64,000 nucleotides of DNA from NCBI GenBank assembly GCA_025594325.1, contig JANHCV010000014.1, forward strand, positions 620,001 through 684,000. Direction: 5' to 3'. Of the stretch, positions 10,158 through 64,000 are shown piece by piece. The number at the start of each line of letters is the position of its first letter. Within the stretch, counting starts at the first letter, position 1. The position numbers were made by a program, and so were the translations under genes. The stretch comes from Blastocladiella emersonii ATCC 22665 (lineage: Eukaryota > Fungi > Blastocladiomycota). The notes below the pieces were generated by a model, which was given only the letters and a program-made list of their open reading frames with translations, made no database searches and had not been told where the DNA came from.

Positions 10158-11146
10158 TCACTCTTCTTTCGCCTGGTCTTTGCTGTCCGCTGTACCAGCA
10201 AGCTTGATGGTCTGAAGCTGCTCGTTGAGAAGTTTGACAGCCTGGGACTGTGCAGCCGAGGCGAGATCAAGGCACTCGAGCATCCCAGCAAGCTTCATCA
10301 TGGAGTGCCAGTCATACAGGTCGAGGTCGGCCGAATCAACACTAAGGGAGGTAAGCGCCGGTTTGATCGATTCTGGAAGCGGAGTGCCAGGAAGCCAGCT
10401 GGTGTAAAGATGGACGAGAGCGAGAACAAACACATTGTTGGACCACGCGGAGAGCTTGATTGGGTCATCAGGGCAGGTCAGCCGCGACCACTCGCCGCGA
10501 AACATTAGTGCAAAAAAAGGAGAAGCCGAAGCGAGGATCGCACGCGAGGCAAAGACGGGCGTAGTTGTGTCGGCTGGCAGGAATTGGACGTCTGAGACTG
10601 CTGGATCATTGAACAGGAGGCACATGCCCTTGAGCGAGCGCATGACGGCAGCGGGTGATTCACCAGCGCCCACAGGCGTCATTGGGACATGGAAGGAAAT
10701 TGCCACCAGGCGAAGATACTGAGGTAAATAGGTTTCGTCGAGACGATCCCACGCAACCGTACTCGAAGAAGAGTACGTTGAACCGGTCACATTGAAGACC
10801 TTTTTGAACGAGGCATGAGCGTCAACGATCAAAGTGCACGAAATTGTGGGGATAGAACTGCTGCACTTATCAAGAACGAGAACAACCTTGTAACGCTCTA
10901 AGCTGTTCGCGATTCGAAAGAACTCGAGGTGAAACTTGGTTGCCCCAAGGGCTCCACCCGCAGAAGAAGGTGGAGTTCGAAAGGTATCCTTCGCAGCAGT
11001 TCCAAGCGTGTCATTTTTCATCGAAAAGTAATGAACGGGCGTGTCCCCGACCTGAGAAGTGTACGGAGGGAAAAATGCATCCTGTTCAACGGATTTAATG
11101 CGTGGATACTACAAGATCGTGTGATCAGGCGTACAGGAAGCTCCAT
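10158..11146 (-). CDS. BTB/POZ protein 1 with N-terminal MATH-like beta-rich region; micro-exon MELP, intron 11134-11082
   Basis: BTB consensus 'FNDPAVSDVQF...VFASRAILASASPFFALMFRGEWS...IKL...FVLALVHLYT'; three paralogues at 44.5-49.3 kb. Confidence 0.85.
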
Positions 11147-11234
11147 CTTTCTTCAAAGATTCATCGTTTGAGAGTGAGGTCGGGAGCCAGCGTTGTGGGC
11201 CCGTCAAGGCCGCTATTTGGCTGCCGGAGTTACC

Positions 11235-11343
11235 CTGGACAACGACCTGGACACGGTCACGAGGGCACGCATGCCCCCGCGCGTTGAACCGCGCGCGACG
11301 CGACGCGACGCTCATTTGAGCGTGATGGCGCTCCTGATCGGGG
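11235..11343 (-). promoter_or_regulatory. Conserved BTB-family promoter blocks (paired TGTCCA half-sites; GCGACGCGACGCTCAT...CGTGATGGCGYTCCTGATCGGGG on + strand)
   Basis: First block recurs at 45620-45644, 47395-47430 and 49373-49399; second block recurs at about 49430-49475. Confidence 0.65.
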
Positions 11344-11378
11344 AACTGTCGTGTCTCGCATTTAGCGTGGGGGATTGT

Positions 11379-11670
11379 TCTCCCGCGACAGTGATCAAGT
11401 ATTTGCAGCTGCCCAGGGAGTCCTTGGACATCAACAAGTTCAGCTGCTCCTGGTCCTGACCAAGGCTGGGTGCCTAGGCAATGGTCAGGGTCGGGAGCTG
11501 CACAAGCAGACGTTTGAGTATGACCCAAAGGAGTGGGTTCTTTTCCGAGCTCGACAAATACGGCGTCAACGTCTCGATGTCGGGCGCAACATCGTATGCA
11601 TCAACATGGGTCCGCTTGACGAATTGCGCCTCGAGACCCGTGGAGCGGATTCAGCCTGCTATATGAGCTC
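11379..11670 (+). pseudogene. Inverted, frameshifted fragment of the neighbouring GTPase gene
   Basis: Aligns to the reverse complement of 12232-12522; translates piecewise to 'VIKYLQL..ESLDINKF', 'LLVLTKAGCLG', 'EYDPKE', 'ELDKYGVN', 'NMGPLD'. Confidence 0.85.
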
Positions 11671-11728
11671 AAACTGAGATTCTACCAAATGGGTGCCCTT
11701 GAGAGATGACCGAAACTGGGTAACGATG

Positions 11729-11843: not shown

Positions 11844-12976
11844 CTACTCCTTTTCATTAGCCTTACTGGCCTCCTGGATAAGGCTCTTGACCCGAGCAAG
11901 GCGCTCGGCCGCGTCCTTCTTCTGGTTTTTGACGCTCAACAGCACCTCCTTGAGCTCCTTGATCTCCTCCTTAATTTCAGCAAGCTTGCAGCCGCTGTGG
12001 TTGATGGCGATTCCCATGCCGATGCCGGAGAGCTGGTCCAGAATAGGGACCCATACGGTACACGCCGTCGCCACAGCAAGGGTTCGCATGCGCCGCTGGT
12101 GCCACACCTTGTCCTTTTGGCGCGACTCGATCATAGCCTTAGTGGTCTTGTAGTTCTCGTTGATCATCTCGACGTCGCCGTTTGCAAGGGCAACGAGCTC
12201 CTTGTACGTCTCGCGCACCTTGAGTGGGCGCAGCTTGCACACGGCGGCCCGAATCCGCTCAACGGTCACGTAGCGCATGTTGTCAAGCGGACCCATGTCA
12301 ATGCACGCAACGTTGCGACCGACCTCAAAGAAGTTGACGCCGTACTTGTCGAGCTCGGCCAGGTACTCCTTCGGATCGTACTCAGACGCTTGCATGGACG
12401 GCTCCCCAGCCCGAGCATCACCCAGGCACCCGGCCTTGGTCAGGACCAGGAGGCAGTTGAACTCGTTAATGTCCTAGAGCTCCTTGAGCAGCTGCAGGTA
12501 GTTGATCAGCGTCACGGGCGACCGCCCGGCATTCGCCACAACCAGAAGCACCGCGGGTGCGTTTTTGAGTTCTGTCAGGTTCTCCTCAATCACGTCCGCA
12601 ACCTTTTTACCAACCCCGCCGAACCCATCACCGTCCTGGATCTCCATCGTGACGTTCGGCGGCAGGAAATGCGGGTTGACCTTGACCGTCTTGCTGCCCG
12701 AATCCACGCTTTGGACGCCGTTGCTCGTCTTGAACACTTTGGCAAACTTTCCCTCCCAGTCACGGGCCTCAACAAGATCGTTACCGAGTGTTGATTTGCC
12801 TAAGGAGAAACAGTGGCCAATGAGTGAGCAGATCCAAGTCATGCTTTTGCAAGCTGTAAGGCATGTTCCGTACCAACGCCAGTGGGACCGTTCATCTTGA
12901 CACGCACGTGCAACGTTTGGCCCGCACGAGTGGTGTCGGACCAGATTTCGGGCGTGTATGTATTGAGAAAGGTCAT
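11844..12976 (-). pseudogene. AIG1/GIMAP-like (TRAFAC) P-loop GTPase with C-terminal hydrophobic segment and coiled coil; intron 12873-12800; in-frame TAG at 12476-12474
   Basis: Splicing gives G1 'GPTGV|GKSTLGN'; G3 'IQDGDGFG'; G4-like 'LVLTKAG' lies 3' of the TAG in the same frame (78 nt in frame to ORF 11844-12395). Subfamily assignment is inference. Confidence 0.75.
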
Positions 12977-14089: not shown

Positions 14090-15334
14090 TCACTCGACGA
14101 CGTGGGTCCACCGCTCCGCAGCCATGATCTCCTCGATCTGGGCCACGATAGTTGTAAAGCTCGGCCGCGTCTTGAAGTCAGCGGCCCAGCACCGCTCAAT
14201 CAGCCCCCACATCTCGCGCGAGTACGTCGGCGCGTGGACCGGCGCCGCAGGCCGTTTCCCGTCCCGGATCATGCCCGCGATCGCCATCGAATCCTTGACC
14301 TCGGCAAACGGCACCTGCCCAGCAACCACCTCGTAGCACAGCATCCCGAACGCAAACACGTCCGGCTCCGTCGTGGCCTTGCTACCTTCCTCATACCTCT
14401 CCGGCGCGAGCCAGCGGACGCACGCGGCGCCGCGGCCGCCGGGATAAAAGTTCTTATCGCGCATGGCGAAGTTGACGAGGCGCGCGAGCCCGTGGTGCGC
14501 AATCTTGGCGTGGCCGGCGTCGTCGACGAACACGGTGGCGGCGCGCAGGTCGCCGTGGAGCAGGCCGGCGTCGTGCATCGCGGCCATGCCCCGCGCGATC
14601 TCGAGGAGTAGCGAAAGGTGCGCCTCGGGCTGCAGCGCGGCGTAGTCGGCGAGGTTCTCGCCCGTGACGGCGGCCGTGACGAGGTACGGGCGCGGGCCGG
14701 CGAAGTTGAGGCCGAGGAAGTCAAGGATGTGCAAGTGATGCAGCTGCGTCCACTTGTTGGCCTCGCGCAGGAACGCGGCGCGGGCGGCCTGGTCCGTCTC
14801 GAGGATCCAGCCGAGGTGCAGGTAGTGCAGCGAGACGGGAAGGCCAGTCGATTTGAGCGTGGCCGAGACGATGTGGGCGTGCGGCGGCGTGAACAAGCAG
14901 GCACTGTCGCTGACGGTAAACTTGCCCTCGGCCATGGTCAGTCGCGCGGCAATCTCGTCGAGTTCGCGGGCCTCTTTGCGCGCATTTTCCGCGGCGCGGC
15001 ACTGGGTGTGCAGGTCGCTGAGCTGCTGGTAGCTGTCCGCGGCGGGCGCGCGCGGTGAGGGGACGAGAAGCGACTTGGTTTCCGCGGTGATGGCCGAGAT
15101 GTAAGCCGCCAAGTCGCGAAACTTGTGGTGGTGGTCAACGCGTCGCGCGGCCGCGGGCAACGACTCGGCCTCCTCGATGAGCAGCCGCAGCGTCGTGTGG
15201 CCCGAGGTAAGCACGTTCTGGAGAGCGGCAACGCGGGCCGTGTCGTTGACTACGAGGCCAAGCAGGGCGTTGAGTTCGGCGAGCTTGCCGCGGATCTCGG
15301 CGACGAGGATTTGCTGCTCGTTGTTGTTGGCCAT
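14090..15334 (-). CDS. TKL-type pseudokinase with N-terminal ~135-aa helical domain (MLKL-like architecture); intronless
   Basis: Kinase C-lobe intact ('RWLAPE', 'DVFAFGMLCYE', 'RCW..D...RPSF') but no Gly-loop, VAIK->VSLH, HGDLKxxN->HGDLRAAT, DFG->HHG. Confidence 0.8.
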   Translation of the reverse strand: MANNNEQQILVAEIRGKLAELNALLGLVVNDTARVAALQNVLTSGHTTLRLLIEEAESLPAAARRVDHHHKFRDLAAYISAITAETKSLLVPSPRAPAADSYQQLSDLHTQCRAAENARKEARELDEIAARLTMAEGKFTVSDSACLFTPPHAHIVSATLKSTGLPVSLHYLHLGWILETDQAARAAFLREANKWTQLHHLHILDFLGLNFAGPRPYLVTAAVTGENLADYAALQPEAHLSLLLEIARGMAAMHDAGLLHGDLRAATVFVDDAGHAKIAHHGLARLVNFAMRDKNFYPGGRGAACVRWLAPERYEEGSKATTEPDVFAFGMLCYEVVAGQVPFAEVKDSMAIAGMIRDGKRPAAPVHAPTYSREMWGLIERCWAADFKTRPSFTTIVAQIEEIMAAERWTHVVE

Positions 15335-17488: not shown

Positions 17489-17567
17489 TGAAGGATGGAT
17501 GGGCACTCGGATGATGTATTTACACTGATACCAACACACTCTCTTCTTCCCCCTGCTCTCGTACCGT

Positions 17568-19121
17568 CTACGCCCCGCGCCGCGCGCCTGCAGCAGGCGG
17601 CGCGACCGCCGCCGGCCCCTCAGTGACGGGCGCCGGCAGCCCAAGCACACGGCGCACGAGCACCGCGAACCGCTTATCGAGCGTAAACGTGATGAGCGGG
17701 TTGAACACGCCGATCAGCGCGACGGGCAGCGCCGACACGCACCCGATGATCGGGTCGAGCGGGCCCTCGGACACCCACGTAATGATCCACACGTACAGGT
17801 ACATGAGCCAGCACGCGATAAACGCGCCGACGACGGCGACAGCGCGCTTCAGCAGCATCTTCTCCTGCTTGCGCGCCGCGATCGCCGCCGGGCTCAGCGA
17901 CGCGTTCATCGACGAGCCCGCGCTGCGCGACAGGAGGCGCAGGCGGCCGGAAGCCGTGCGCGAGCGAGACAGCGTGCTTGCGCCGCTCGCGGACATGTGG
18001 CTCGCGGCGCTCGGCGAGCGCGGGATCCCGCCCACGGCAGCCCCGTCGGCGGCGGCAGACGCGGACGCGGTCGGCGACGCCGAGGAACCGCTGCGACCGC
18101 TGAGGAACGAGAGACGCTGGCCGAACGCGATCCCGCTCGTGCGCGGCGACGGCGACGTCGTCGAGCTGTTGGGCGAGCCCGACGACGACTTGGTCGGGAC
18201 GATCGGGTTGTGGCCGCCGTTGATGGAGCCGTCCGGGTCCATGCCCGACCGCGCGAGGAGCGACTTGATCATGGACCCGCCGAGCGACGCCGACGCGCCA
18301 CCGCCGCCGATGGAGCCGACCGTGGTGCCCGACGCGCCGAGCGAGGAGCCGAGCGCGGCGCCTGAGGCCGCGGCCGCGGCCAAACTCGCACCGGGACCCG
18401 ATGGCGCGGCGCCTAGCTTGGCCGCGGTGCTGGCGGCGGCCCCCGCGTTCGTGGACGGCGGGGCGGCCGCGGCGGGCTTCTTGACGAGCGACTTTTGCGA
18501 CTTGCGGAACTCGGCGATGATGTTCCAGTACCCGCCGACCATGGCGAGGATCGTAGACGAGATCATGACACAGATGACGACCTTGAGGACGGCGTCGGTC
18601 GGCTTGCGGGACGACCAGTCGGGCGAGCAGTACGCGCCGGCGCCAATCGGCACATAGCCGGACCCGCCGGGCAGGAGCGGGAGGACCGCGTACCCGCCGC
18701 CGCCGACCCAGCACGCGGCGATCAGCTTGATGACGATGTCGCGCTCGACCTTCTTCTTGCGCACAATCGACAGGTACCGCTCGGCGGTCGTCAGGAACAG
18801 CGTCGTGACCGTGTTGAAGACAAAGTAGCCCGTCACGATGCCCATCCAGGTGCACCCGAACTGGCCCGTGATCCACCGTCCCGCGATCGCGTTGCTGGTC
18901 CAGAACGGGAGGTTGGCGAGCGCGAGGCCCATGTCGGCAATCGCCAGGTTCACGATCAAAAGGTTCGCGCCCGTCGTCAGCAGCTTGCCCTTGCGCGACG
19001 CGTGGACGAGGATCGAGTTGAGGGTCACGTTGCACGTCATGAGGATCGCGTAGACCCACGTGAAGGCCACCGTCGCCACGGGCATGTCGTCCTCGAGCGT
19101 GTAGGGTCGCTCGTGCGACAT
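17568..19121 (-). CDS. Class A (rhodopsin-like) GPCR, opsin-like but lacking the retinal-binding lysine; intronless
   Basis: 7 hydrophobic segments; 'NLAIAD' (TM2), TM3 Cys and 'ERY', ECL2 'YVPIGAGAYCSPDW', TM6 'CWLMY', TM7 'FNPLI'; very long Ala/Ser/Gly-rich ICL3. Confidence 0.9.
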   Translation of the reverse strand: MSHERPYTLEDDMPVATVAFTWVYAILMTCNVTLNSILVHASRKGKLLTTGANLLIVNLAIADMGLALANLPFWTSNAIAGRWITGQFGCTWMGIVTGYFVFNTVTTLFLTTAERYLSIVRKKKVERDIVIKLIAACWVGGGGYAVLPLLPGGSGYVPIGAGAYCSPDWSSRKPTDAVLKVVICVMISSTILAMVGGYWNIIAEFRKSQKSLVKKPAAAAPPSTNAGAAASTAAKLGAAPSGPGASLAAAAASGAALGSSLGASGTTVGSIGGGGASASLGGSMIKSLLARSGMDPDGSINGGHNPIVPTKSSSGSPNSSTTSPSPRTSGIAFGQRLSFLSGRSGSSASPTASASAAADGAAVGGIPRSPSAASHMSASGASTLSRSRTASGRLRLLSRSAGSSMNASLSPAAIAARKQEKMLLKRAVAVVGAFIACWLMYLYVWIITWVSEGPLDPIIGCVSALPVALIGVFNPLITFTLDKRFAVLVRRVLGLPAPVTEGPAAVAPPAAGARRGA

Positions 19122-19599: not shown

Positions 19600-22500
19600 T
19601 CACTCGTCGCGCTCGCGGCGGGCCGAGAACCGCACGATGCGACGCGCGCGGTGAGCGCGGCGCGGTGCCACACGCTTCTCCACCGAGGGTGCGGCCGCGT
19701 CGTCGGCCTCCTCGTCAAAGTAGTTGAGCGACCGGAGCGTGACGCGGCCCTCGCCGAGCTGCCACCCGCGCGGGAGCAACGCCGGCTCGGCCGTGTACTC
19801 GTTCGGGTTCTGCACCTTGGCCGCGAACCGCGAGAAGATGGCCGTCGCGTCGCCGCCCGCCGCGGGCGAGGCGGCGTTGTCGCTGCCGCCCTGGATCTTG
19901 AGCAGCAGGCCGAGCAGGTGCTTGGCGTACGCGTCGTCGGCCGCGCGCGTCGAGGCCTCGTTGTCGTGCGACTCGGACGCGGACTCGGGCTCGGGCGTGA
20001 ACTCGCGCGCGAGCGGGAGCGACTCGTCGCCGTCCTCGACGACCTCCTCCTGCTCGTCGCGCTCGCGCTCGCCGTCGAGATCGCGCGCCTGCTGCTTGCC
20101 ACGGCCGCGGCGGCCGCCGAACAGCTGCTTGAGCGGGACCGCGACGGGGCGGTCGAACATGGACAGCTTCTCGCGGCGCGGACCGCGAGCGGCGACACCG
20201 CGTGGTTCGTCGGCGTCCTCCTCCTCCTGCTCCTCGGCGCCGTTGCGGTCGTACTCGGCCGACTCGTCAATGTACTCCTCGGACTCGGACTCCTCGTACT
20301 CGGCCTCCTCGATCACCTTGCCGCGCGACGGCTTGCCGGGGCGGGAACGCGTGCGGCGCTCGGCCACCTCCTCGTCGACCTCGCGCTCGGGCTGTTCCTC
20401 CTCGCCGTCGTCGTCGTGGCGCGGCGCGGGCTTGCGCTCGCCCTTCTTGCCGCGGCCGACGCGCACGCCCTTCTTGCCGCCGCGCGTCTTGGCCGACGAC
20501 TGCTTCTTGCCACGGCCCGACTTGCCGCCGCGACGCGGTGCCGCAACCTCACCATCCTCGGCCGCCGTATCGGCGTCACCCGAGCGAGCGGGCTGCTGCT
20601 CCGTCTCGGGCGACTGCTGCTCGCCGTCCTGGTCGGCACGCCCGCGCTTGCCGCCGCGCGCGCGCTTCGCGAGACCGCCGAGCGCGCCCTTGACGCCTCC
20701 GCGGCGACCGCCCGCCTTCTTGCCTGAGAGCTTCTTCTTGAGGCCCTTGCCCGCCTTGCCGAGCTTGGACGCCTTACGGCCGAGCTTGCCGCGGCCCATC
20801 TTGGACGCCTTGTTGCGGAGCTTGGACGCCTTACGGCCGAGCTTGCCGAGCTTTTTGCCCTTGCCACCGCCCATCTTGGACGCCTTACGGCGGAGCTTGT
20901 CGAGCTTACCGGCCTTGCCGCCGCGGCGCAGGCTCTTGCCGGCCTTGACCAGCTTGCCGAGCTTGCCCGCCTTACCGCGCAGGCCCTTACCGGCCTTCTT
21001 GCCGCGGAGACCCTTGCCGGCCTTGGCGAGCTTGCCCATCTTGGACACCTTGCCGCGTAGCTTGGCCGACTTACGGCCTAGCTTGCCGACGCCGCCGACC
21101 TTGCCCGCCTTGCCGCCGCGGAGACCCTTGGCGCCCTTGGCTAACTTGCCGAGCTTGCCGCCCTTGAGCTTGGACGCCTTGCCCGCGAGCTTACCGAGCT
21201 TGCCGCCCTTCTTACCGAGCTTCCCGGCCTTGGCCGCGAGGCCGCGGGCCTTGCCCGCCTTCCCAGCGAGCTTGCCGAGCTTGCCCATCTTCGACGCCTT
21301 CCCGCCCAGCTTGCCGAGACCGCGCGCCTTGCCGCCCATCTTGGATGCCTTGCCGCCCAGCTTACCGAGCCCGCGGGCCTTGGCGCCGAGCTTCGACGCC
21401 TTACCCGCGGCCTTGCCGAGCTTGCCGAGCTTACCGCCGCCGCCGCGCGCACCGCGCGCCGCCTTGCCGACCTTGGCCGCGAGACCCCGCGCCGCCTTGG
21501 GCGCCTTGCCGGCCTTCTTACCGCCCACGCGCGGCGCGCGCTGCGACTGCTGGGCCGGTGCGACCGAGTGCTGAGGCTGCTGCTGAACCGGCGCGACCGA
21601 ACGCTGCTGATGCATCTGCTGCTGGCGCTGCGCCGGACCGCGCATCTGGACGGCCGCCTGCGGCGCCGACGACGCGTTCCCGTGTCCGCCGCGGCAGGTA
21701 CACGGCGCCTCGACACGCGGCTGCGGCCGCTGGTGGTGCATCGGGCACGCCGCCGGCGCGAAGACGGGGCGGCGGTACCGCGTCTGCTGGTGGAGCGCCG
21801 GGTGGCGCTGCATGACGGCGATGACGCGGCGCGGCGGCGCGCGGCGCGGGACGATGCGGACGACGCGCTGCGGCTGCGGCACCGGGGCCGGCGCCGGCTG
21901 CTGCGCGGGAGCGCTGCCGAGGCCGAGGAGATTCGAGAGGTCCGGGAACGGCGCCGGCGCGTGCTGCTGCTGCGCGGGCGCGCCGAGGCCGAGGAGCTTG
22001 GACAGGTCGGGCAACGGCGCAGCCTGCTGCTGCTGCTGCTGGCGGCGACGGAGGAGATGGACAAACGTCGGCTTCGGCACCTGAGCCACCGCGGCGCGGC
22101 GCCGCAGCAGCGCAATCAGCGTCGTCGTCGACTGGCCCTTGCGCGGCGCGTAGTACCCGCTGCTGAGCCCGCACTTGGTCGGGCGCCCGCGAACGCGGAC
22201 ACACGGGCACCGGCACATGGCGTCGCGCCGCGTGCACGGGCAGCGGCACATGGCGCGGCGGATGCTGCACTTGGACGCGCCCGCGGGTGGGCCGGAGAAG
22301 TAGCCCGACGGACCCGAGGGGCCGCCGTTGCGGTAGAACTGGTGGTTGCGCGCGGGCGCGGGCGGCGCGGGGCCGAGCGCGCCGGACGAAGGCGAGCCGC
22401 GGAACTGCTGCTGCTGCTGCTGCTGCGCGGGAGCGCCGGACATGGCGCGGAACTGCTGCTGCTGAGGCGGGCCGCGGAACTGCTGCTGCTGCTGAGGAGG

Positions 22501-23397
22501 ACCACGAGGACCAGCGGGACCGGCGCCACGAGGCGGCGCGCCGCCGCTCGCCGCGTGCATCGCGCGCGACGGCATCGGTGCGCGGCCACCACCGCGCGGA
22601 GCCGGCGGGCCAGCACGACGCGAAGCGGGTGCGCGCGGCGGCGGGGCCGGAGCCTCGTCGGCTTCGCCGTCACCACCACCGCCCGACGACGACGACTCGC
22701 CGGCCTCCTCGTCACCGCCACCACCGCCGCCCGCACCGAGCCCCGCCGCGAGCCCCGCGACGGACCCGAGCTTGGCGCCGATGGGCGACTTGCCGGCGAT
22801 CTTGCCGACCATCTTGAGCGCGGGGTTCCCGCCGATCTTGCCGATCTGCCCCGCGACGCCCGTCTTGGCGAGGACCCCCATGCCCTGCTTCTTGAGGAAC
22901 CCGACACCCATATTCGCAAACTCGCGGCGGCCCTTCTTCGTCACCAAATTCCCGCCCTTCTCAACCATATCCGTGAGGACGCCGGGCAGCGGGATGGGCG
23001 CGACGGCGCCGAGCGTCGCCGACAGCATGCCGCCGACGTTGCCCGACTTGGCCGCCTTGACAAACTTTTTCGCGGCGCGGATCTCGTCGCCGACCAGGAA
23101 GTCGCCGCCTTTCGCCATCACCTTGCCGAACTTCTTGAACCCGCCGCCCACCTTGCCCAGGCCCTTGGTCATCTTCTTGAAGAACTTGATCCCGCTCACG
23201 GTCTGGATGTGGCTCGCCCACAGGAACAGGACGAGCAGGTTGAGCAGCGTCAGGCGCGACGGGACGGCCGAGGCGCGCGCGCGCCGGGGAGGCGCCGCGG
23301 TACTCGGGGTCGAGGCCGTGGCCGTCGACGACGACGCGGCGGGCGCGTCGCCAGCGGCGGCCTGCTTGCGCTTCGGGTACGCGCGGATGATGGCCAT
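19600..23397 (-). CDS. 1265-aa putative secreted low-complexity protein (cationic K/G/A/L repeats, Q/P-rich, CxCPC motifs, acidic C-terminal region)
   Basis: 3.8-kb uninterrupted ORF with G/C-ending codon bias; hydrophobic segment LTLLNLLVLFLW (aa 49-60); modular similarity to the 24426-25985 protein. Confidence 0.8.
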   Translation of the reverse strand: MAIIRAYPKRKQAAAGDAPAASSSTATASTPSTAAPPRRARASAVPSRLTLLNLLVLFLWASHIQTVSGIKFFKKMTKGLGKVGGGFKKFGKVMAKGGDFLVGDEIRAAKKFVKAAKSGNVGGMLSATLGAVAPIPLPGVLTDMVEKGGNLVTKKGRREFANMGVGFLKKQGMGVLAKTGVAGQIGKIGGNPALKMVGKIAGKSPIGAKLGSVAGLAAGLGAGGGGGGDEEAGESSSSGGGGDGEADEAPAPPPRAPASRRAGPPAPRGGGRAPMPSRAMHAASGGAPPRGAGPAGPRGPPQQQQQFRGPPQQQQFRAMSGAPAQQQQQQQFRGSPSSGALGPAPPAPARNHQFYRNGGPSGPSGYFSGPPAGASKCSIRRAMCRCPCTRRDAMCRCPCVRVRGRPTKCGLSSGYYAPRKGQSTTTLIALLRRRAAVAQVPKPTFVHLLRRRQQQQQQAAPLPDLSKLLGLGAPAQQQHAPAPFPDLSNLLGLGSAPAQQPAPAPVPQPQRVVRIVPRRAPPRRVIAVMQRHPALHQQTRYRRPVFAPAACPMHHQRPQPRVEAPCTCRGGHGNASSAPQAAVQMRGPAQRQQQMHQQRSVAPVQQQPQHSVAPAQQSQRAPRVGGKKAGKAPKAARGLAAKVGKAARGARGGGGKLGKLGKAAGKASKLGAKARGLGKLGGKASKMGGKARGLGKLGGKASKMGKLGKLAGKAGKARGLAAKAGKLGKKGGKLGKLAGKASKLKGGKLGKLAKGAKGLRGGKAGKVGGVGKLGRKSAKLRGKVSKMGKLAKAGKGLRGKKAGKGLRGKAGKLGKLVKAGKSLRRGGKAGKLDKLRRKASKMGGGKGKKLGKLGRKASKLRNKASKMGRGKLGRKASKLGKAGKGLKKKLSGKKAGGRRGGVKGALGGLAKRARGGKRGRADQDGEQQSPETEQQPARSGDADTAAEDGEVAAPRRGGKSGRGKKQSSAKTRGGKKGVRVGRGKKGERKPAPRHDDDGEEEQPEREVDEEVAERRTRSRPGKPSRGKVIEEAEYEESESEEYIDESAEYDRNGAEEQEEEDADEPRGVAARGPRREKLSMFDRPVAVPLKQLFGGRRGRGKQQARDLDGERERDEQEEVVEDGDESLPLAREFTPEPESASESHDNEASTRAADDAYAKHLLGLLLKIQGGSDNAASPAAGGDATAIFSRFAAKVQNPNEYTAEPALLPRGWQLGEGRVTLRSLNYFDEEADDAAAPSVEKRVAPRRAHRARRIVRFSARRERDE

Positions 23398-48277: not shown

Positions 48278-49284
48278 TTACTCTTCCTTGGCCTTGGTCG
48301 CATCGCCCATGGCGCCAGCAAGTTCGATGGCCTTGAACTCCTTGTCGATGAGAGCGATAGCCTTCGACCGAGCCGCCGCCGCGAGATCAACACACTCGAG
48401 CATGCCCGCGAGCTTCATCATCGAGCGCCAGTCGTCGAGCTCGAAATGAGCGAGATCCACAGAAAGAGCGGCAAGAGCTGGCTTGATAGGCTCGGGAAGC
48501 GGGGTACCAGGCAGCCAGTCGGTGTAGAGGTGGACGAGCGCGAGGACGAAGACGTCGTGAGACCAAGCCGGGAGCTTGATTGGATCGGCAGAGTTGGAGA
48601 GGCGCGACCACTCGCCGCGGAACATGAGAGCGAAAAAGGGCGAGGCCGTTGCGAGGATAGCGCGTGAAGCGGAGACAGGCTCGGTCGCGTCACCAGGAAG
48701 AAAATGAGCGTCGGATACAGTCGAATCGTTGAAAATCTGGCACATGTCCTGGACCGAGCGAACAAGGCCAGTCGAAGCTGCCAGTTTGGCCGATGCAGCT
48801 GCTTTGGGGGTCGAAAATGAGACAGAGACCAGCTTGAGATAGCGTGGCAAATAAGTCTCGTCGATGCCGTCAAACACAACCGTGGCCGAGCTGGAGAGCG
48901 GCGAAGCAGTCACTTCGATGGTCTTAGTGTACGAAGACGACCCATGAACGGTGACCGTGCAAGAAACGGTTGAGACTGGCAAGTCGCCCTTTTCAAGTAC
49001 AAGGGTCGTTTTCCACTTGGACGAGTACGAGGTTGTCGGAAACTGCGTAAAGAGAAGATAGAAAGAGCGAGAGCCAAGTACTCCACCCGCAGCAGTTGGC
49101 GGAGTTTGGAAGCCGTTTTTAGCCTCGTTCAGCGGGTCCTCGTTCTTCAAAGCAAAGCGATGGACGTAGGCGTCGCCGTCCTTCGACGTGCAGGCTGAGA
49201 AGAATAGTTTCTATGGGAGATCGTTAACGCTTCATTCTTTTCCGTTGCGGGTGCGAAGGTCCGGTAGCGTACTGCGAGATTCAT
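48278..49284 (-). CDS. BTB/POZ protein 4; micro-exon MNLA, intron 49272-49211
   Basis: 'FNDSTVSDAHF...VSASRAILATASPFFALMFRGEWS'; closest to BTB1 in both protein and promoter. Confidence 0.85.
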
Positions 49285-54053: not shown

Positions 54054-56507
54054 ATGAAGCAAATGAAGAAATCGGGCCGCAACTCGGCGCAGCACGTCAA
54101 GGCGAGCAACGGGCGCCCGCCCGCCCGCGCCTCGGCCGGCTGAACCCTCGAGTGGCGTCGTCGTGCCGCTCTCGTCGCTTCCTGACACCATCGTGACGCT
54201 CGTGCTGCAGCTGGCGCGCCCACGCACGGCCGCCTGCGTCGCTTCGAGCAGCATCATCACATCCGCGCGCGATTCGCGTCTCAACCGCATTTGGGCGCCC
54301 ATCGTGCTCCGCCGCTTTCTGAACCCGCAGCTTGAGACGCAGTTCAAGCAGAAGCTGCGCGGGATGCGCATCTACAACGAGCTCTGCTTCCTGCTCAACC
54401 AGGCCTACTTCAACTCGACCCTCAAGTTCCCCGTCCGCGGCGTTCTCGCCCCTGACGCGCAGCTCATTCGTGCTCTCATGGCGGGCTTTCTCGTCGACCA
54501 GCGCCAGTTCGCGCGCAAGCACCCGAAATTCGTCGAGGGCGAGCTGGCTTGCGCCCTGAACGAGCTCTTTTACTGCTCTGCGGACCCCGTCGGCGACTTG
54601 GCCAAAGTGCGGCCGAGCCACGTTTCGCACTCGCACATGGCGGCGGCGTTTCTCATCATCGCCGCCGCCGCGCACATGGACGACGCCGACTTGCTCACGG
54701 ACCTGCTTGACGCCGTGCAGCGCGACCTCCCCGAGGTCCTCAAACTAAGCCTCCCGCCATCGCATTGGTTCGGTCTCACTTTCGAGGGCGAAATCGAGCT
54801 CATGAATTCGGGCGTCATGAATGTCCTCAGCAACGACTACGAGCGCGAGCTCGTCCCGACCTCGTTCCTCGAGCACCTGTGCCTCGCCTCGGCCGTCACC
54901 TGGTGCCCGAACGCGTTCCGCGTGCTCAGCGACCCGCGCTTCCGCATCGACACGAAGTGGCTCGCGCACGTCTTCGGGCAGAACACGGTCGCGCCGTTCG
55001 CCCTCGCGGTGCTCCAGAACAAAAAGACGGCGCGCCCGCCCGCCGAATTTATGCCGATCCTCGACTGGCTGCTGCGCGAGCACAAGCACGTCCGCTTGTG
55101 GACCGCGACCGGGTTCCATATCGTCACGCACCTTCTCGAAAAGCTCCCGCGCGACTACATGCGCTACGCCGCGGAGCACTACCCGACGTGCCTCACCGAC
55201 GCGATAGACGATCGCGATCTCGAGCGGATTCGGCACTTTATTCTTCCACTGGAAGCCCAAGGATCTCGACCCGGACTTTTTCGTCGTGCTCGACAAACTC
55301 GGGCTGCTCATGGACTGGACGTGGGGGATCATTTTGCAGTTTGGGCTCGCCGAGGACGAGGGGACCGGGACCAGCGATCTCTCGTCGTTTGCCGTCGACC
55401 ACCTCGGGTCGCGCCTCACTGCCGTTCTCGTCGAGGGTACGCCCGCGCTCATCCCGCGCCGCACGAATCTGATGGACTCACCACCTTCTTCCTCGAACAG
55501 CCTTCCGCATGAGCATCCTTGACTCGTGCACGGACGGGCACAGCGCGACGTGCGTCCTGCTTCAAGCGTACCGCCAGCTCGGCCGCGAGGCCCTCGAAGC
55601 CGCGCTCCCGAAAATGGCTGCCGTCATGAACGAGTCGTTTGAGTTCATGCACCAGAGCGTCGACGACCGCGCCCGCCTATCGCGCCCGATCGCCCTGATC
55701 CTCGACCACCTGTTGACGTGCGGCGAGCGCCGCCGGCTCAGCCCGCCGATCCTGTTCCGCCTCGCCAACGAGTTCCTCGCCCTCGTCCGCTCGCCGCGCG
55801 CGAGCGAGTACGCGGGCATGGCGTGGTTGCCCGTTGTCGTGCTGGGGGATGAGCACTCGCGCGAGGCCGCGATCGCGCAGGTTCGCGCCAAGGGAACGGC
55901 GACCACGCGCGTGTTCCTTGTCGTCCTGCTCGAGCAGCTCTTCAGCGGTCAAGCTAAGACGATGTACTCGCCGTTCCCGCGCGAGGAGACGCGCCGGTGT
56001 ACGCTCGAGACGCACGCGGCGTGGGGCAACGCCATGGACGACCTGTACCAGCTGCTCCGCGAGGCCAACGCCACTGCCGCGTGGTTCCCCGCTGACTGCG
56101 CGAGCTCGGTCCGCCTCATCGCGCAAGCCAAGGGCCGCACTGGGCTGCAGGGCCGGATCGGCGACGAGCTCGCCGAATACCCGAACGGCGTCTGCCCGCG
56201 GTACCGCGCACCCGTCGTCCCGCGCGTGCAGCAGGCGTTCCGCTTCGTCCTCCGCACCGAGCCAAAGCAGGCGCTCGCCGAGATCGCGGCCGCGACTGCG
56301 CTTCCGCTCGAGTTTTGGTGGCTCGTGCCCGACGGCGCGCTCGACGGCGTCAAGGACGGGAAGTGGGTCATGAAGATGGCGCGCAGCGTCAAGCGCGAGT
56401 TTGGCGGCGAGGCGGCGCGGGACGTGTTCCGCGAGATTCGGCGGGTTGCGCCCAAGACGGTGGCGGGGCCGGTCGAGTCGGTGATTGCGGCGCTCGAGGG
56501 GCAGTGA
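54054..56507 (+). pseudogene. Large F-box-like family C copy 1; intron 55437-55500; two +1 frameshifts (~54100-54135 and ~55228)
   Basis: 'MKQM' start matches paralogue starts 'MKLM'/'MNRM' but is out of frame with 'LSSLPDTIVTLVLQLA'; second shift restores 'LFFHWKPKDLDPDFFVVLDKLGLL'. Confidence 0.75.
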
Positions 56508-56746: not shown

Positions 56747-56998
56747 GCTGGAGACGACGCGTTTCAATCTTGGCAGCTCTCGCACGACCGCGTAGATCGC
56801 GTGTACCATGAAAGTGTATGAAAGTGGCCGCTGGTCGCAACTCGCATGTCGTGGGAACTGGAGCCAAGGCGAAGGCTGGGGGATGGGAATCGGCGCAATC
56901 AAGCGCGACAGCGTTGGCGAACAGCGCCCGCGACTCTAAACTTGAACCCCACTCGTCGACGCGCCCTCTCTCTCTCTCCCGACGACACTCAATCGGCC

Positions 56999-59407
56999 AT
57001 GAAACTAATGGAAACTCCTGGCGACTTGGTGCAACGTGCCGCGGTCGGTGCTTCGAGGCATGGCGGCCAGTCGGGCGTCCCCGCCGCCACATCGCTCAGG
57101 TTGCTTCCCGACGAGATCGTGACCATGGTCTTGCAGCAGGCGCAGCCGCGCTCGGTCGTCTGCGCTTCCTCTCGCATCCTGTTCACAGCCGCGCATGTGC
57201 CCTCCATCGGCCGCATTTGGGCTCCCGTGGTGCTTCGCCGTTACATCAACCCGCAGCTCACTGAATCTTTCGAGCACCTTCCTTTGGCCTGGGTCCACTC
57301 CGAGATTGGTGTTGTGGCTGCTCAGCCGCTCTTTGCTCCTCACTTGGACGAGCCGCTTGCAGGCGTCGCGGAACCAGACCCGTACCTAGTCTACGTGCTC
57401 ATGGACGGCTTGCTCTACGACTTGCGAGCTTACGCCAAGCGGCACTGGAGAACGTTTCCCCATGCTATTGACTGGGCCCTGCTCGCGCATTTTCTGGGCC
57501 CAGAGGGCGACTTTGCCAAGGATCGGCCCCGCTTTCCTGTACATCCGCACCTCGTCTCCCCGTTTATCATCCTCGCAATGGCTGTTCAAATGGATGACGC
57601 TTACCTGCTCGCGGCGCTGATTGACGCCGTTGAGCGGAACCTCTCTGAGTTGCTTCGCGCCAGCAATCACGCACTCTTGTGGTGGTCACTGACTTTCCAA
57701 AGCCAGCTACTCTGCGCCCAGTACAACGTGAGCGGAGCATATGGGTCAACGATCCATGTCTCGTTCGTTGGGCAGCTACTCCTGTTCGCGGCCGTGTCCT
57801 GGAGCAACAAGTGCGTTCACGTTCTCAGCGACCCGCGATTTGGCCTCGATATGCGCGGCCTTCCCCACGTCCTCGGCGATAACGTGCTTCCTCTCTTTGC
57901 AATCTCGGCTCTCGTCGAGCACAAAAATCGGCCGTTTGTGGAGCTCCTGCCAATTCTTCACTGGCTCCTTTGTACGCGCAGGCCGGGACCCATGCGCGCG
58001 CCCAACGGAACCCATCTAGCTGTCCTCTTGACGGGTCGAGTCCCTTGGGGCTGCTTTGTTCACGTAGCAAGCTTGTTTCCAACCTGTCTCACTGACGGCC
58101 TCGAGCAAGCGGACTTGAACGAAATTTCCTCCGAAGTTTAGACGTGGGACCTCATGGATGAAAGCGCCTACCATCTCACGCTTTTGAACAAGCTCGGTTT
58201 CCTTGACAACACCGCCTGGGGTCACGTCATATTGTGCGGTCTCATCCAGGATGGGGGCACCGGCGCTGGCGCGCTCTCGCAGTTTGCTTCGAGTCAGGTT
58301 GGACTCGGCTTTCAATCTGCGCTTGCTGATGGTACGTCGAATCTGTCAAGTAAACGTCACTGATTGTCCTGACTACTCACTCCCACTCCACGCGGCATCC
58401 GAGTAGCTTTGTACTTGAGCGTGAAGCGCGACTGTCGCGGTGGTGGTAGCGCGGTCAGCCTGCTCACACTTGCCAGCCGCAGGCTTGGCAAAGGTCCTTT
58501 CAGATTAGCAGTGCATGCATTTGCCACAGCGATTGCTGAAGCTCTTCTCGAGACGGAGCATCTAGATCAAACTGGGCTCTCTCGCATTGTCGTCATTGAG
58601 CGCGCACTAAACGACTTGGTCAGAGGAGTCAAGTGGGCGCTCGGTCGGTGGACTTGCTTCGTCCTCGCAAACCAGATCATGCACTTGCTAGGACCGATCG
58701 GCCTTTCCAATATCATGGAGCTGTCATCGACTCTGGCGGCGGTCCTCAATGACCCCGCAACGCGCGACCCTGCACTTGCACATATTCACTGGAGTGGAAC
58801 TGCGCGCGCAATGCTGGATACCATGATCTCCCACCAGCTACGCTCGGGTCCGTTCGTACTCACGCCGGGCGTACTTGCAATGACTAAGCGCTGCTTTCGA
58901 TTCACGCACGAGTCGTGGTTTGATGCCATGTCGCAGCTCCAGCAGGTCGCACTTGCGGATCGTAAACCTGACGAGGCAGCAGCGCCTGCAACGTCATTCC
59001 CGATTGGTATTCGGTCGAGTATCAACTCTCAAATGATCACGGGCTCTCGAGGAGGGCTGCACGACCATCTCGTCCGTGAGCGCGAGGCACCCGCAGGTCT
59101 CGACACTTGCCCCCACTGCGGCGGGAGGTTGGTACTCCGTCTGCGCCGCACGTACGAGTTTCTCACCCGCAACGAGCTCGCAGCAACTCTCGACGCGTGC
59201 GAGGTCCTGATGCCGGTCGCTTTTTGGGAACTCGTACCAGACGGCGAGCTTGACCGTGTCAAGGACGTTGCTTGGATCGCGGCTTTGGTGCGCCAGGCGA
59301 AGCTTCACCTTGATGCTGAGATGTTCGACGCGACGATCCGCGAACTTGCTCGTGTTGCGCCCGTCGCCTCGAGCTCTGCCGAGTTCGTTAGCGCGACGCT
59401 TGAGTAG
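56999..59407 (+). pseudogene. Large F-box-like family C copy 2; intron 58332-58406; in-frame TAG at 58139-58141
   Basis: 'LRLLPDEIVTMVLQQA'; frame continues through TAG to 'TWDLMDESAYHLTLLNKLGFL'; splice G|CT joins ORF 58409-59407. Confidence 0.75.
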
Positions 59408-59674: not shown

Positions 59675-62077
59675 ATGAATCGGATGGATGACCGCTTACA
59701 CTTGATGCAACGTGCTCTCGGCGCTGGCGGCGATGCCGATATGCCACCAGTTGCACCACCGGCCGAACTCGCCACGCTTCCGGACATGCTCCTCACGTCG
59801 ATTCTTCAACTCGCATGCCCTCGCTCGATCTCTTGCATCGCATCTCGCGCTCTTCTCGGCCCAGCTCGCGAGCTGAGCCTCAACCGCATTTGGGCGCCTG
59901 TCGTGCTTCGCCACTTCATCAACCCTCGGCTTCTCGCAGGCTACAAGGCCAAGCGGAGCAACCGCAGATTTTCCGAGACCGGTTTCGTTCTCGACCAATC
60001 TTTCGTGCTTTCGTTCGAAGCGATATCAATCGAGCGAACCGCGCCGCCCAGCCCACAGCTCTTGCTCGCGCTAATGAAGGGGTACCTGTTCGACATTCGT
60101 CACCACGCACAGGGCAACTGTTTGGTTTCCAATGGAGCGCTTTTTTGGGCCCTCATTGATCACGTCAGCCCTTTGTCGGACCAAGCAAACCGGAAGAAAC
60201 ACAAGCCCCAATTCGATGTACATCCGCACCTTATCGCACCGTTTCTGATCCTCGCAGGCGCTGTGTGGCAAGACGACCTTGTCCTGCTCAAACAGCTGCT
60301 TCGTTCCTTCGGCCCTAAAATTCCTCACGTCCTCAAAGCGCTCCTCTCGGCGCGCGCTTGGCTACGCCTCACGCTGTCAACCGAGTTGTTCGTTCCCCGG
60401 CTACCTCAGATCGGGGTAGGCCGCGGTAATATCACGTTCCTCTCATACCTCCTGATTCTTTCCGCGCTCTCGTGGAGCAGCAAGTGCTTTCGCTTTCTAA
60501 GCGGCCCATTCATGACAAACAATCCGGGCCTCAAAGTCGACCTGGAAAGTCTTGCGCATGCACTTGGCGATAACGCGATAGCCGCGCTTTCTCTCTCGCA
60601 GCTTGTCTACGAGAATCGGCCTCCCGACACTCTCAAACCAATTTTTGACTGGTTCATGTCCACGTGCAAGCCGGGTGCCTTGCAAGTTCGTGGTGCCCAC
60701 ATCGTACTCGACCTGATCCGTGGGTCATCTTGGGCCTATCTTTCCTATATCGTCGAGCACTACCCTGGTCCTATCAAACTTGGCTTTGAGCGCGCTAACA
60801 AGCTCTTGGCATGGATGTTCTTCTTGAAGAAGAATCCAGAGAAGGTCGACTTGGCCTTTGTCATGACTCTCGAGGCGCTTGAGCTCCTCGACTGTTCCAG
60901 GGCTTGGGCTTACGTGCTTGCCATTGGACTGATGCAGGACGAAGGTACTGGCATTGGCGCAGTTTCGAGGCTCGCTGTTGATCGACTTGGCTCTGACCTC
61001 AAAGATGACGTTTCGTTTGGTGCGTGAAAAGGCCTCGAAAACCCTTAGTACCTGACCAATGCTTAAATTTTGCAACTATGTAGCGACTGCAGTCGGCTCG
61101 GAAGGGTCGCATGAAGGCCGTTGCAGCGCAACCAGCGTGTTACTATTTGGACATAGCCAGTTTGGGGGCGCTCAACTCGAAGTCATGATGCCCCAGATCG
61201 CCAAGAACATCTTGAAAGCCTATCACATTCACCGACTGGAGCAGCGTGATCCTTCTGCCCACGTCACTTTTATCAGCGCTTGCTTGGACCGACCATTTGC
61301 TTGCACTGAGCGACAGCTGATCCCGTGGCACCTCCTCTGCCTCGCGAACGAGCTGTTTGCAGCACGTGAGATTTACGCGCTGCCGACTCTCGGGGCGATC
61401 GGATGGGTCCCGGCTGTTGTTCTCACCGATCCATCGACGCGGACAGCTGCACTTGACAGTATTCGCAACAGCGGCACAGCGGCATCGTTCTTCGCATCCA
61501 TGCTCACAAGCCAGCTCGAGCAGCGCGCGACGCGGTTTCCGGCCAACTTGCCCGCGGAAACCGATACCTGCCTTCTCCAGGCCCATGATTCGTGGTTTGA
61601 GGCCATGTCCGAGCTCCATCAAATCGCACACAACGCCAGGCGACCGACCCAGCCTCGCTACTCTCCGCGGGAGTGATTTCACTGATCCAGCAGCAAATGC
61701 TCAACGGGCCGCAGAACGGCCTTCAAGCACTTCTCGACGCAGAGCTGGCCGATGCTGCCTGTTGCGGAGCTTGCCCTCGATGCGGCGCAACGTTGGTCCC
61801 GCCGCCCCGTCGCACGTACGAGTTTCTCGCATTGACCGAGCTACGCTTGACGCTCGAGGCGGTCCAGACCGACTCTGTGGTCCCGCTCGCTTTTTGGGAG
61901 CTAGTTCCGTCCGGCGCTCTTGACAACGTCAAGGACGCGGCCTGGATTGCTGACATGGCGCGCAAATCGAAGCACGAACTTGACGCCGACACGTCGGCCG
62001 CTATCATTCGTGAGCTCCGCCGCGTCGCACCGGCGGCTTCGAGCTCGACCGCTTCCTGCGATGCGTCCCTCGAATGA
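59675..62077 (+). pseudogene. Large F-box-like family C copy 3; intron 61020-61083; 1-nt deletion frameshift at ~61635
   Basis: 'LATLPDMLLTSILQLA'; exon-2 frame ends at 61676 while the homologous C-terminus 'GVISLIQQQMLNG...FWELVPSGALDNVKD' is in the -1 frame. Confidence 0.75.
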
Positions 62078-62391
62078 CCTTGCACGCGCTCGAAGCTCCA
62101 TGGCGCGCGGCTGCCTTGATACGGCGGGCCGACCAAAATATTTTTAACCCGATTGCATTTCCAATCAACTGCCTACCACGTACCCGAAGCTAGTTTGAGG
62201 GGTTTGTACAAGCAATGCGGCCGGAAAACGCGTCCAAACGCGTTGCGACAGGAGTGACAGGTGGATCAGCTGATGCTCGCCGAGGGCCGAGTTGAGGCGG
62301 CGCAGCGGGCGGCCGTCCCGCCGCGGCCGTTCTCCTCCTCCAGTTGTTTCCCAAAGATGCCCTGTGCTACATCATGCAACCGAAAAAGTCC

Positions 62392-64000
62392 ATGCAAACG
62401 CAAATGAAAGTCAAACTTGCTATTCCCGAGATCATAGACCGGATCCTCGTCGCGGCCATCAACTCGCACGTCCCCAGCAATGTCGCCCTTACCGGTGGCA
62501 TTGTCGACCTGCGCAAGCTTTCCGCATACTCTCGCGTCTTGCCTCGCGACCAGATCCCGGGTGTTTTTCGAGCTCTGTCGGCACTTGTGGTGAAGCTTCC
62601 GATCAGCACAGCAAGCAACTTTGGACTGCTTAACTTCCTTCGCTTCCGCTCCGGATACGGTCTTCCCCTGCTTTGCGACTTTTCTTTCCTCACCCAGGCT
62701 GCGTCCAGAAAAATGTATGACGTCCTCGACTTTTGGCGCGACTCGGGGGTCCAACTTCACAACCTCGGCAGAATCCTCGAGCTGCCCGAGACTGCTCGCG
62801 TCCTCCTGTTTGGAACTGTCTCCCCGCCTTTCCACTCAGACGCTCCAAGCCGATTTGCTCGCGGTGACGCTCTCTGCCGAGACCTTCTCGCAGCCGTCCC
62901 TCGGGGCGAGACGATGATTTCTATCGACCGCGCGCTTCTTTCAGAGGAGGGCACGACTTTGCTTAACCGCGCCCTATCGGTCCCTGGTCACCCCGTCACT
63001 TCGCTCACCCTTGTCATGGTCGACCTCAACTGGGACCGCCTTCGTGCGATTCAGCTTCCGTCCTCGCTAGAGTCGCTCCACCTTGAATCGAACCGACTCG
63101 CGCATCGGTGCCCCGCGGACCCGGCGCCTTGGCTTCCAAACACGCTTTCGTCGCTGACTCTTCGCAAGGAATGCCTTGGTTATGCGGGTCTCGCCGACCA
63201 CCTCAAGCACTTGCCATCGGGCCTCACCTCTCTGTCGTTGGACGAGTGCGAAATGGACTTGGCCGCTTTCAACCATCTCGCTGCCGGTCTGCCTGCTTCG
63301 CTTCGATCCCTGTCCATCACTCGATGCTCGATGGGCAACCGGGCTTTGGCGGCGCTGGCCCAGAAACTTCCCTCAACTTTGCTGTCGCTAGACTTGACCA
63401 AAAATGCCCTCTCGAACAAGGGCATGATTGCGCTCGCCCAGCACTTGCCCTCCAGCCTCGAATCGTTGATCCTTGATGACAACCCAAAGGTCGGCATGCC
63501 CGGCCTCCACGCCCTCCTCAACGCTCTCCCGGCTGGTCTTCAACGTCTTCAGCTGCGAGATGGTTGTACTGACGCTTGCGCCCTTGTGGCCCTCGCTGGT
63601 CGCGAACGCCCATCACTTAAGCACCTCGACCTCTCAGGCAGCGTTTGTTATTCGGTCGACTGGAACTCGCACCCAAACTTTAGTTTTCTTGCCGGGTCCG
63701 CTTGGAACACGACTCCAGCCTTCCCTGCAATCGAGGAGCTACGCATGGCAGGCTTCCAATTTTACAAATCAGAGAACGCAACGGCCGTGCTCCCGCGGAT
63801 CCTTGGCCCCAAGCTTCAGCGACTCGATCTCAACGGTTGCGGGGTCGGCGACGCTGGCGTCGACGCGATTCTTGAATGCGCAACGCCAGCCCTTACCCAC
63901 CTCGACCTGACAATGTGTGGCGTCCAAAACGCCGGTGCAGCATCTCTTGCTACGCGGCTGCCCGCGTCCGTGACTTGGCTGAATCTTGACGGCAATGGGA
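62392..64000 (+). CDS. Ankyrin-like + RNI-type LRR protein B3, intronless as far as visible, runs off the window end (absent from the ORF track)
   Basis: Hand translation open from ATG 62392 (or 62374) to 64000: 'IPEIIDRILVAA', 'DVLDFWRDSG', LRRs 'LPSSLESLHLESNRL', 'LPSTLLSLDLTKNALSNKG', 'LQRLDLNGCGVGDAG'. Confidence 0.85.
   Translation, partial: MQTQMKVKLAIPEIIDRILVAAINSHVPSNVALTGGIVDLRKLSAYSRVLPRDQIPGVFRALSALVVKLPISTASNFGLLNFLRFRSGYGLPLLCDFSFLTQAASRKMYDVLDFWRDSGVQLHNLGRILELPETARVLLFGTVSPPFHSDAPSRFARGDALCRDLLAAVPRGETMISIDRALLSEEGTTLLNRALSVPGHPVTSLTLVMVDLNWDRLRAIQLPSSLESLHLESNRLAHRCPADPAPWLPNTLSSLTLRKECLGYAGLADHLKHLPSGLTSLSLDECEMDLAAFNHLAAGLPASLRSLSITRCSMGNRALAALAQKLPSTLLSLDLTKNALSNKGMIALAQHLPSSLESLILDDNPKVGMPGLHALLNALPAGLQRLQLRDGCTDACALVALAGRERPSLKHLDLSGSVCYSVDWNSHPNFSFLAGSAWNTTPAFPAIEELRMAGFQFYKSENATAVLPRILGPKLQRLDLNGCGVGDAGVDAILECATPALTHLDLTMCGVQNAGAASLATRLPASVTWLNLDGNG

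Follow-up and report, generated by a model that had tools for sequence, protein, structure and literature searches.

Gene families in the window

The window analysed here is a 64,000-nucleotide stretch of the genome of Blastocladiella emersonii ATCC 22665 (C6:620001-684000; assembly of 32.65 Mb in 21 contigs), a zoosporic fungus, as an earlier note made from the sequence alone had correctly guessed. It holds 13 accessory genes, which self-blastp of all window open reading frames (ORFs) placed in the three families of that note: four genes with a BTB/POZ domain, six large genes of two families termed A and B, and three leucine-rich repeat (LRR) genes. The BTB and A/B genes, the main subject of this analysis, are putative substrate adaptors of cullin-RING ubiquitin ligases. 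Across the window, GC content swings between approximately 0.70–0.74 and 0.54–0.60, and the GC content at third codon positions (GC3) is 0.58–0.79 in the accessory genes compared to 0.83–0.96 in the neighbouring genes. B1, an apparently intact gene of family B (GC3 0.79–0.90), and an intact pseudokinase gene (GC3 0.88) are host-like in this respect.

Spliced genes were searched exon by exon. The introns are short (49–75 nt), with GTACGT-type donors and CTRAC branch sites, and are conserved within families; most breaks in the ORFs arise because these introns interrupt the genes. Five genes remained broken after intron correction. A0 is a fragment, A2 and B3 are frameshifted, and B2 and a GTPase gene carry one in-frame TAG each, in keeping with the frequent gene death noted previously. 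Pseudogenes thus make up four of the six A/B copies. The members of the three families are:

10158-11021, minus strand: BTB1, an intact ORF of 287 amino acids with a variable N-terminal domain and a BTB/POZ domain (Pfam BTB, 21.7 bits); 55% identical to BTB4
44564-45466, minus strand: BTB2 (Pfam BTB, 22.7 bits)
46291-47163, minus strand: BTB3 (Pfam BTB, 21.6 bits)
48278-49150, minus strand: BTB4 (Pfam BTB, 26 bits)
30618-31823, plus strand: A0, a fragmentary family A pseudogene with an N-terminal piece (30618-30962) and a C-terminal piece (31077-31820), matched to A1 and A2 by blastp
32029-34655, plus strand: A1, family A, apparently intact, with a phase-1 GC-AG intron at 33320-33384
34853-37474, plus strand: A2, a family A pseudogene with a frameshift near 35555-35575 and an intron at 36167-36233
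54163-56507, plus strand: B1, family B, apparently intact, with an intron at 55437-55500
56846-59407, plus strand: B2, a family B pseudogene with an in-frame TAG at 58139-58141 and an intron at 58332-58406
59675-62077, plus strand: B3, a family B pseudogene with an intron at 61020-61083 and a frameshift near 61650
37679-39248, plus strand: L1, an LRR gene with a phase-0 intron at 38135-38192 (Pfam LRR_6, 41 bits; LRR protein 3goz in PDB, E 1.7e-8)
39552-41146, plus strand: L2, an LRR gene with a phase-0 intron at 40026-40081, 38% identical to L1 over 340 amino acids
62296-64000, plus strand: L3, an LRR-family gene that runs past the window end, 30–32% identical to L1 and L2, with the family N-terminal motif at 62389-62598

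Domain architecture of the BTB, A/B and LRR families

The four BTB genes share 44–56% pairwise identity (self-blastp), and all of them exceed the Pfam gathering score for BTB/POZ (PF00651; 21.6–26 bits against a score of 20.5). A profile of the family matched the BTB domains of the Cul3 adaptors BTBD6 (E 3e-4), KLHL3 and SPOP in PDB, such that the domain-level reading of these genes in the earlier note stands. Conservation is unevenly distributed along the proteins. The N-terminal 135 residues retain 23–41% identity (nonsynonymous divergence [dN] 0.55–1.18; ratio to synonymous divergence [dN/dS] 0.3–0.7), compared to 66–72% for the BTB domain and C-terminal part (dN about 0.2, dN/dS 0.12–0.29), the latter values indicating purifying selection on that part. 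As judged from these alignments, the BTB genes are modular, with a conserved part presumed to serve docking and a fast-diverging part, and are most likely putative Cul3-type adaptors. The arrangement resembles that of SPOP/BPM-type Cul3 adaptors, in which a variable substrate-type N-terminal domain likewise precedes the BTB domain; the profile matches to the SPOP BTB are weak, and MATH-BTB clusters occur among the language-model neighbours. Unlike the SPOP/BPM type, the window genes have no MATH domain detected by Pfam, and no BACK domain was detected.

Families A and B are homologous to one another (hhalign 97%, E 1e-10, 318 columns), and the six genes described previously as large F-box-like genes therefore form one superfamily. 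A1 and A2 have their phase-1 intron at a homologous position, and a single intron is common to B1, B2 and B3. The intron donor of A1 appears to be GCACGT where A2 has GTACGT; the A1 intron is a rare one of GC-AG type, or its splice site has mutated. An AlphaFold2 model of the N-terminal exon of A1 (21-sequence alignment) predicted an all-alpha solenoid (predicted local distance difference test [pLDDT] 77.7). No match to the family A profile was found among PDB sequences. A word-indexed protein search with the C-terminal exon of A1 gave no match either, probably because proteins of full length lie beyond the lengths it covered. A profile search of 1.84 billion representatives returned 14 matches to A/B, the strong matches being confined to B. 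emersonii and Catenaria anguillulae being among the weak ones; by this measure the superfamily appears nearly orphan and nearly absent outside B. emersonii. Two family A proteins on contig C6, KAI9152442.1 and KAI9152436.1, carry the annotation ‘ribonucleases P/MRP protein subunit pop7’, a label that likely stems from gene models merging a family A gene with an adjoining pop7 gene.

The N-terminal motif of A/B was compared, as an alignment of 34 copies, with a profile built from 20 genuine F-boxes of the same genome. With 50 columns aligned, which cover the ~45-residue box and its LPxE...W pattern in full, hhalign gave 79.5% (P 1.5e-5); this value rose to 88.8% when ten database relatives were added and was 91.3% for the relatives alone. 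Overall, these comparisons gave 79.5–91.3% (P 1.5e-5 to 9e-7, 42–50 columns), below the usual 95% level, with scores of 28.7–35.1 compared to at most 14.3 in reversed and 130 column-shuffled controls. Distant Catenaria relatives have conserved the motif, and Pfam F-box matches in two relatives reach E 0.037 and 0.13 only. A divergent F-box at the A/B N-terminus is probable on these comparisons, but not proven. Legionella AnkB offers a parallel, with ankyrin repeats after an F-box where A/B have helical repeats after an F-box-like motif. The AnkB ankyrin domain ranks with the weak structural matches of the A1 model (Z 5.4–5.5, below significance for helical repeats). The A/B proteins differ in being much larger (~800–900 amino acids) and in possessing a conserved orphan C-terminal domain and no Pfam ankyrin match.

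Among the LRR genes, L1 matches an LRR model directly (LRR_6, RNI-like), while L2 and L3 were assigned through homology. L1 and L2 have the phase-0 intron in common and both contain weak matches to the FNIP repeat. An F-box at the N-terminus of this family was considered and rejected (hhalign 0.8%).

Genomic distribution and neighbouring genes

All of these families extend well beyond the window. Genome-wide, there are at least 39 matches to the BTB family, at least 62–70 to A, at least 64 to B and at least 144 to the LRR family, along with 36–41 to the kinase (two queries) and nine to the GTPase. Many of the BTB, A and B copies carry internal stops. Once collapsed to loci, at least 24–50 for each of these three families, they are distributed very unevenly: contig C6, with 3.8% of the genome, holds 20 of the 46 A loci (P 1e-16), and C5 holds 13; B loci are concentrated on C6 (19 of 50) and C21 (20 of 50), and BTB loci on C21 (11 of 24) and C6 (5 of 24). 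In permutations within contigs, BTB loci were no nearer to A/B loci than expected by chance (P 0.35–0.76) and the proximity of A to B loci was marginal (P 0.02–0.24). The chance-level BTB–A/B distances indicate that the interleaving of these genes reflects a shared compartment, not a cassette. Several pairs of family matches have identical scores (C6:742727-749462, minus strand, and C6:909636-916369, plus strand; C6:766019 and 901319; C6:151624 and 188947; C5:542344 and 701988), in opposite or parallel orientation, which points to large, recent and partly inverted segmental duplications within C6 and C5.

Shared promoter motifs had been proposed for the window genes. The 12-mer GCGYTGCGCCAC does occur at −107 to −160 of A0, A2, L1 and L2, and there are six exact copies in the window between 30529 and 43895 (30529, 34733, 37541, 39445 and 41263 on the plus strand; 43884 on the minus strand). 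With up to one mismatch, 12 matches were found in the window (4.3 expected). Across the genome, however, it has 1,383 copies compared to 183 for a reversed control, mostly on core contigs and away from these families, so the proposal holds for the presence of the motif upstream of these four genes and not for its specificity. It is a strongly over-represented promoter-proximal element, and its genomic frequency marks it as a general cis-element, with no evidence for a dedicated regulon. A second candidate, the MCB-like ACGCGT, was rejected (nine upstream sites, 4.9 expected); it shows no upstream enrichment and is abundant everywhere.

The pseudokinase gene, the GTPase pseudogene and BTB1 are consecutive on the minus strand:

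14090-15334, minus strand: pseudokinase, an intact ORF of 414 amino acids with a 150-residue helical N-terminus (Pfam PK_Tyr_Ser-Thr, 131 bits)
11844-12976, minus strand: GTPase pseudogene with a P-loop (GKST), DGDG and an atypical TKAG; one in-frame TAG at 12474-12476
11375-11677, plus strand: inverted partial duplicate of the middle part of the GTPase gene, 52% identical over 64 amino acids to 11847-12473 on the minus strand (blastp)

The window kinase is TKL/TK-like and has no glycine loop; H replaces the VAIK lysine, T the catalytic-loop Asn, and HHG the DFG motif. Its paralogues retain GRGGFG, VAIK, HGDLKANN and DFG, which makes the window gene a pseudokinase offshoot of a non-RD kinase family that is apparently active. 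These paralogous kinases (C6:864230, C6:1115726, C4:175542, C20:1180920, C20:1332142, C20:1374667 and C16:548381) have HGD instead of HRD, with the other catalytic motifs complete, and a helical N-terminal domain of 200–280 amino acids. The helical-bundle, MLKL-like pseudokinase of the earlier note is upheld as a pseudokinase, with four catalytic motifs lost; an MLKL_N bundle is not detectable in it. The AlphaFold2 model has four N-terminal helices, at a pLDDT of only 50–60. MLKL_N (PF22215) was not matched by Pfam in the window kinase, its hhalign comparison with the genuine MLKL_N domains of the genome reached 0.7%, and a fold search with the model returned kinase domains only, with no MLKL-specific signal. 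Two close paralogues do have sub-threshold MLKL_N matches. The two genuine MLKL_N domains of the genome (58–59 and 49 bits, above the Pfam cut-off) are both on contig C15:

C15:1437357-1437647, minus strand: MLKL_N domain (L046:4265-4732, minus strand)
C15:1556081-1556395, plus strand: MLKL_N domain (L045:3004-3492, plus strand)

Each is followed directly by a kinase ORF of ~1,100 amino acids that passes Pfam kinase models in full, so that, by their predicted domains, the C15 genes of this blastocladiomycete combine a kinase with an N-terminus of MLKL type. Compared to MLKL, plant MLKLs and fungal HeLo-type proteins, the window gene has the same order of a helical N-terminus and a catalytically dead kinase domain, and it shares a genome with the C15 genes. 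It differs in that its N-terminus is not seen as MLKL_N by Pfam or hhalign and that the kinases most closely related to it appear to be active ones of the non-RD type, not pseudokinases.

The GTPase family (nine copies in the genome; intact paralogues of 313–440 amino acids) has a G1 motif and an atypical G4 (TKAG). The AIG1 model (PF04548) found no match in the window GTPase pieces, in an intact 400-residue paralogue or in a six-frame scan of the genome at E ≤ 1, and the family profile found nothing significant in PDB. The language-model neighbours of a GTPase paralogue are AIG1/MMR_HSR1 clusters (score 0.94, 182 shared features), a resemblance that serves as a lead only, and the AIG1-like label given to this gene was not sustained by Pfam. 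The family is like AIG1/GIMAP proteins in its P-loop GKST, DxxG motif and C-terminal coiled coil; it is unlike them in the lack of Pfam and PDB sequence matches and in its G4, and its window copy is a pseudogene.

Elsewhere, one of the genuine MLKL_N-kinase genes has a GTPase paralogue 1 kb upstream (C15:1554765-1557490), and kinase and BTB matches occur on one strand within 1.4 kb at C11:2077350-2078784 (minus strand), with two TGA in the kinase part; the latter could represent a gene fusing helical, kinase and BTB parts, or what is left of one. For six other GTPase paralogues, ~8 kb of sequence to one side was examined, and none of these families was found there. The GTPase pseudogene and the pseudokinase are best placed in separate small families, as neighbours rather than demonstrated partners of the adaptors.

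The GC3-rich genes next to the accessory families include NSUN5, a 7tm_1 receptor, EI24, a class-III aminotransferase and three large orphan ORFs. The receptor gene (17568-19121, minus strand) is of the rhodopsin family (Pfam 101 bits), and a long insert separates its matched halves. The orphan ORFs are:

19600-23397, minus strand: long GC-rich ORF of 1,265 amino acids
24426-26567, minus strand: long GC-rich ORF of 713 amino acids
26669-29452, plus strand: long GC-rich ORF of 927 amino acids

No Pfam domain was found in any of the three. The accessory genes had been described as inserted between ordinary housekeeping genes; they do sit in lower-GC3 islands between GC3-rich genes, but for the block with these three ORFs the housekeeping label is only tentative.

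Probable birth and death of putative cullin-RING adaptors

These observations probably reflect an accessory compartment in which putative substrate adaptors of cullin-RING ligases undergo birth-and-death evolution, the explanation preferred here. The window would be a slice of an accessory, lower-GC3 gene compartment on contig C6, in which large families restricted to Blastocladiales evolve by tandem duplication, divergence and pseudogenisation. Two of the families would most likely be substrate-recognition subunits of cullin-RING ubiquitin ligases. In the BTB family, a fast-diverging N-terminal domain of ~135 residues would be joined to a conserved BTB domain in a Cul3-type adaptor, while in A/B a conserved, divergent F-box-like motif, presumed to dock Skp1, would be followed by the alpha-solenoid and the conserved C-terminal domain. 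Proteins of both families would thereby dock to cullin or Skp1 and direct the ubiquitination of targets. The LRR family would be a third repeat-protein family of the same compartment, without F-box evidence. The explanation draws on the observed domains, family sizes, chromosomal concentration, modular conservation and gene death.

Several results weigh against this explanation. Pfam F-box models (PF00646, PF12937 and relatives) had no match up to E 10 among 21 members of family A, nor up to E 0.1 among the window B ORFs, and of 70 matches to PF12937 in a six-frame genome scan (~40 above the cut-off), none was at an A/B gene. The F-box-like character claimed in the earlier note is accordingly supported by the profile-profile comparison alone and not by the Pfam scans. 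AlphaFold2 placed helices at the F-box-like segment of A1, though with a pLDDT of only 50–58. The A1 solenoid had no Foldseek match at E ≤ 1e-3, and its best Z values against the full structure library (VIA-align), most of them for ankyrin domains, were only 5–6.2, a level without significance where helical repeats are compared. Ankyrin Pfam models also had no match in the window proteins or the family A members, and the ankyrin-like description made previously is left with these weak structural matches. The synonymous divergence (dS) of the BTB genes is saturated (0.8 to >2), and positive selection therefore cannot be shown in them. Lastly, the frameshifts scored as gene death could partly be long-read assembly errors, and the length of contig C17 was assumed in the permutation test.

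The earlier note had interpreted the arrays, the GTPase and the pseudokinase as one co-regulated immune module for non-self recognition, ubiquitination and MLKL-like cell death. The architecture of the families resembles the adaptor expansions of nematodes and plants (PMC8120010; 10.1101/586834), the BTB genes have variable recognition parts, and there is some recurrent linkage, with the kinase-GTPase-BTB1 row in the window, the GTPase near an MLKL_N-kinase gene on C15 and the kinase-BTB match on C11; the paralogous kinases are also non-RD, two with sub-threshold MLKL_N matches. A single module of this kind is nevertheless unlikely. The families are spread genome-wide with BTB–A/B distances at chance and A–B proximity marginal, the shared motif has over a thousand copies in the genome, the window GTPase is dead, the window kinase has no detectable MLKL_N and the ~8 kb beside six other GTPase paralogues lack these families. 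A related idea, of nematode- or plant-like surveillance in an early-diverging fungus, draws its hints from the places in the window, on C15 and on C11 where kinase, GTPase and BTB genes are neighbours. In this speculative scenario, to which only a low probability was assigned, cullin-RING adaptors in their hundreds (BTB, cryptic F-box and LRR), all evolving fast, might recognise proteins of parasites or viruses and be coupled to MLKL-type kinases and AIG1-like GTPases.

Neutral drift has been proposed for many plant F-box genes (PMC3030570), and the families described here could similarly be mostly neutral by-products of a duplication-prone, low-recombination compartment, with most copies individually functionless. 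The pseudogenes among the window A/B copies and the many genome-wide matches with stops would fit such drift, as would the reduced GC3 and codon bias, the large segments of C6 and C5 that were duplicated recently and score identically, and the random interleaving of families. Against it, the BTB and C-terminal part is under purifying selection, the A/B N-terminal motif is conserved between genera, and the intact B1 and pseudokinase have host-like GC3, all of which leave drift as the main explanation improbable. A foreign or selfish origin, with the lower-GC islands as remnants of an endogenised giant virus or of BTB, F-box and LRR/FNIP families carried by a transposon, was judged far less plausible still. 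The GC of the islands is below that of the flanking genes, L1 and L2 have their FNIP-repeat matches, and BTB, F-box and LRR/FNIP repeat families are typical of giant viruses. However, neither family A nor the BTB family has relatives in IMG/VR viral contigs, for which reason a viral origin was rejected, and no viral hallmark or transposase domain occurred among the ORFs scanned. The genes also have short, host-type introns with GTACGT donors, and relatives exist in Catenaria. Repeat-induced point mutation (RIP) was likewise rejected as the source of the lower GC, as dinucleotide indices in the window are normal with no RIP-type bias.

Birth-and-death evolution of putative adaptors has precedents in the F-box and MATH-BTB expansions of Caenorhabditis and plants, which comprise tens to hundreds of clustered paralogues with many pseudogenes and regional concentration (PMC8120010, PMC8665587, PMC3030570); a cullin-RING ligase takes part in the intracellular pathogen response of C. 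elegans (10.1101/586834). The B. emersonii families share with these expansions a conserved, presumed docking part and a fast-diverging, presumed recognition part, turnover, pseudogenes and chromosomal concentration. They differ in occurring in an early-diverging fungus, in an F-box too divergent for Pfam, and in recognition parts (the alpha-solenoid and orphan C-terminal domain of A/B, and the N-terminal domain that precedes the BTB) that match no known family. These families are not mentioned in the genome paper (PMC9730499). Their concentration on C6, C21 and C5 suggests accessory-like chromosomes in a zoosporic fungus. If the adaptor interpretation is true, Blastocladiella would be a third lineage, after nematodes and plants, with massive, compartmentalised expansions of ubiquitin-ligase adaptors, and A/B would be a previously unrecognised F-box-type family of ~100 loci found only in the Blastocladiales. 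The species would then be a tractable fungal model for the question of whether defence or drift lies behind such expansions.

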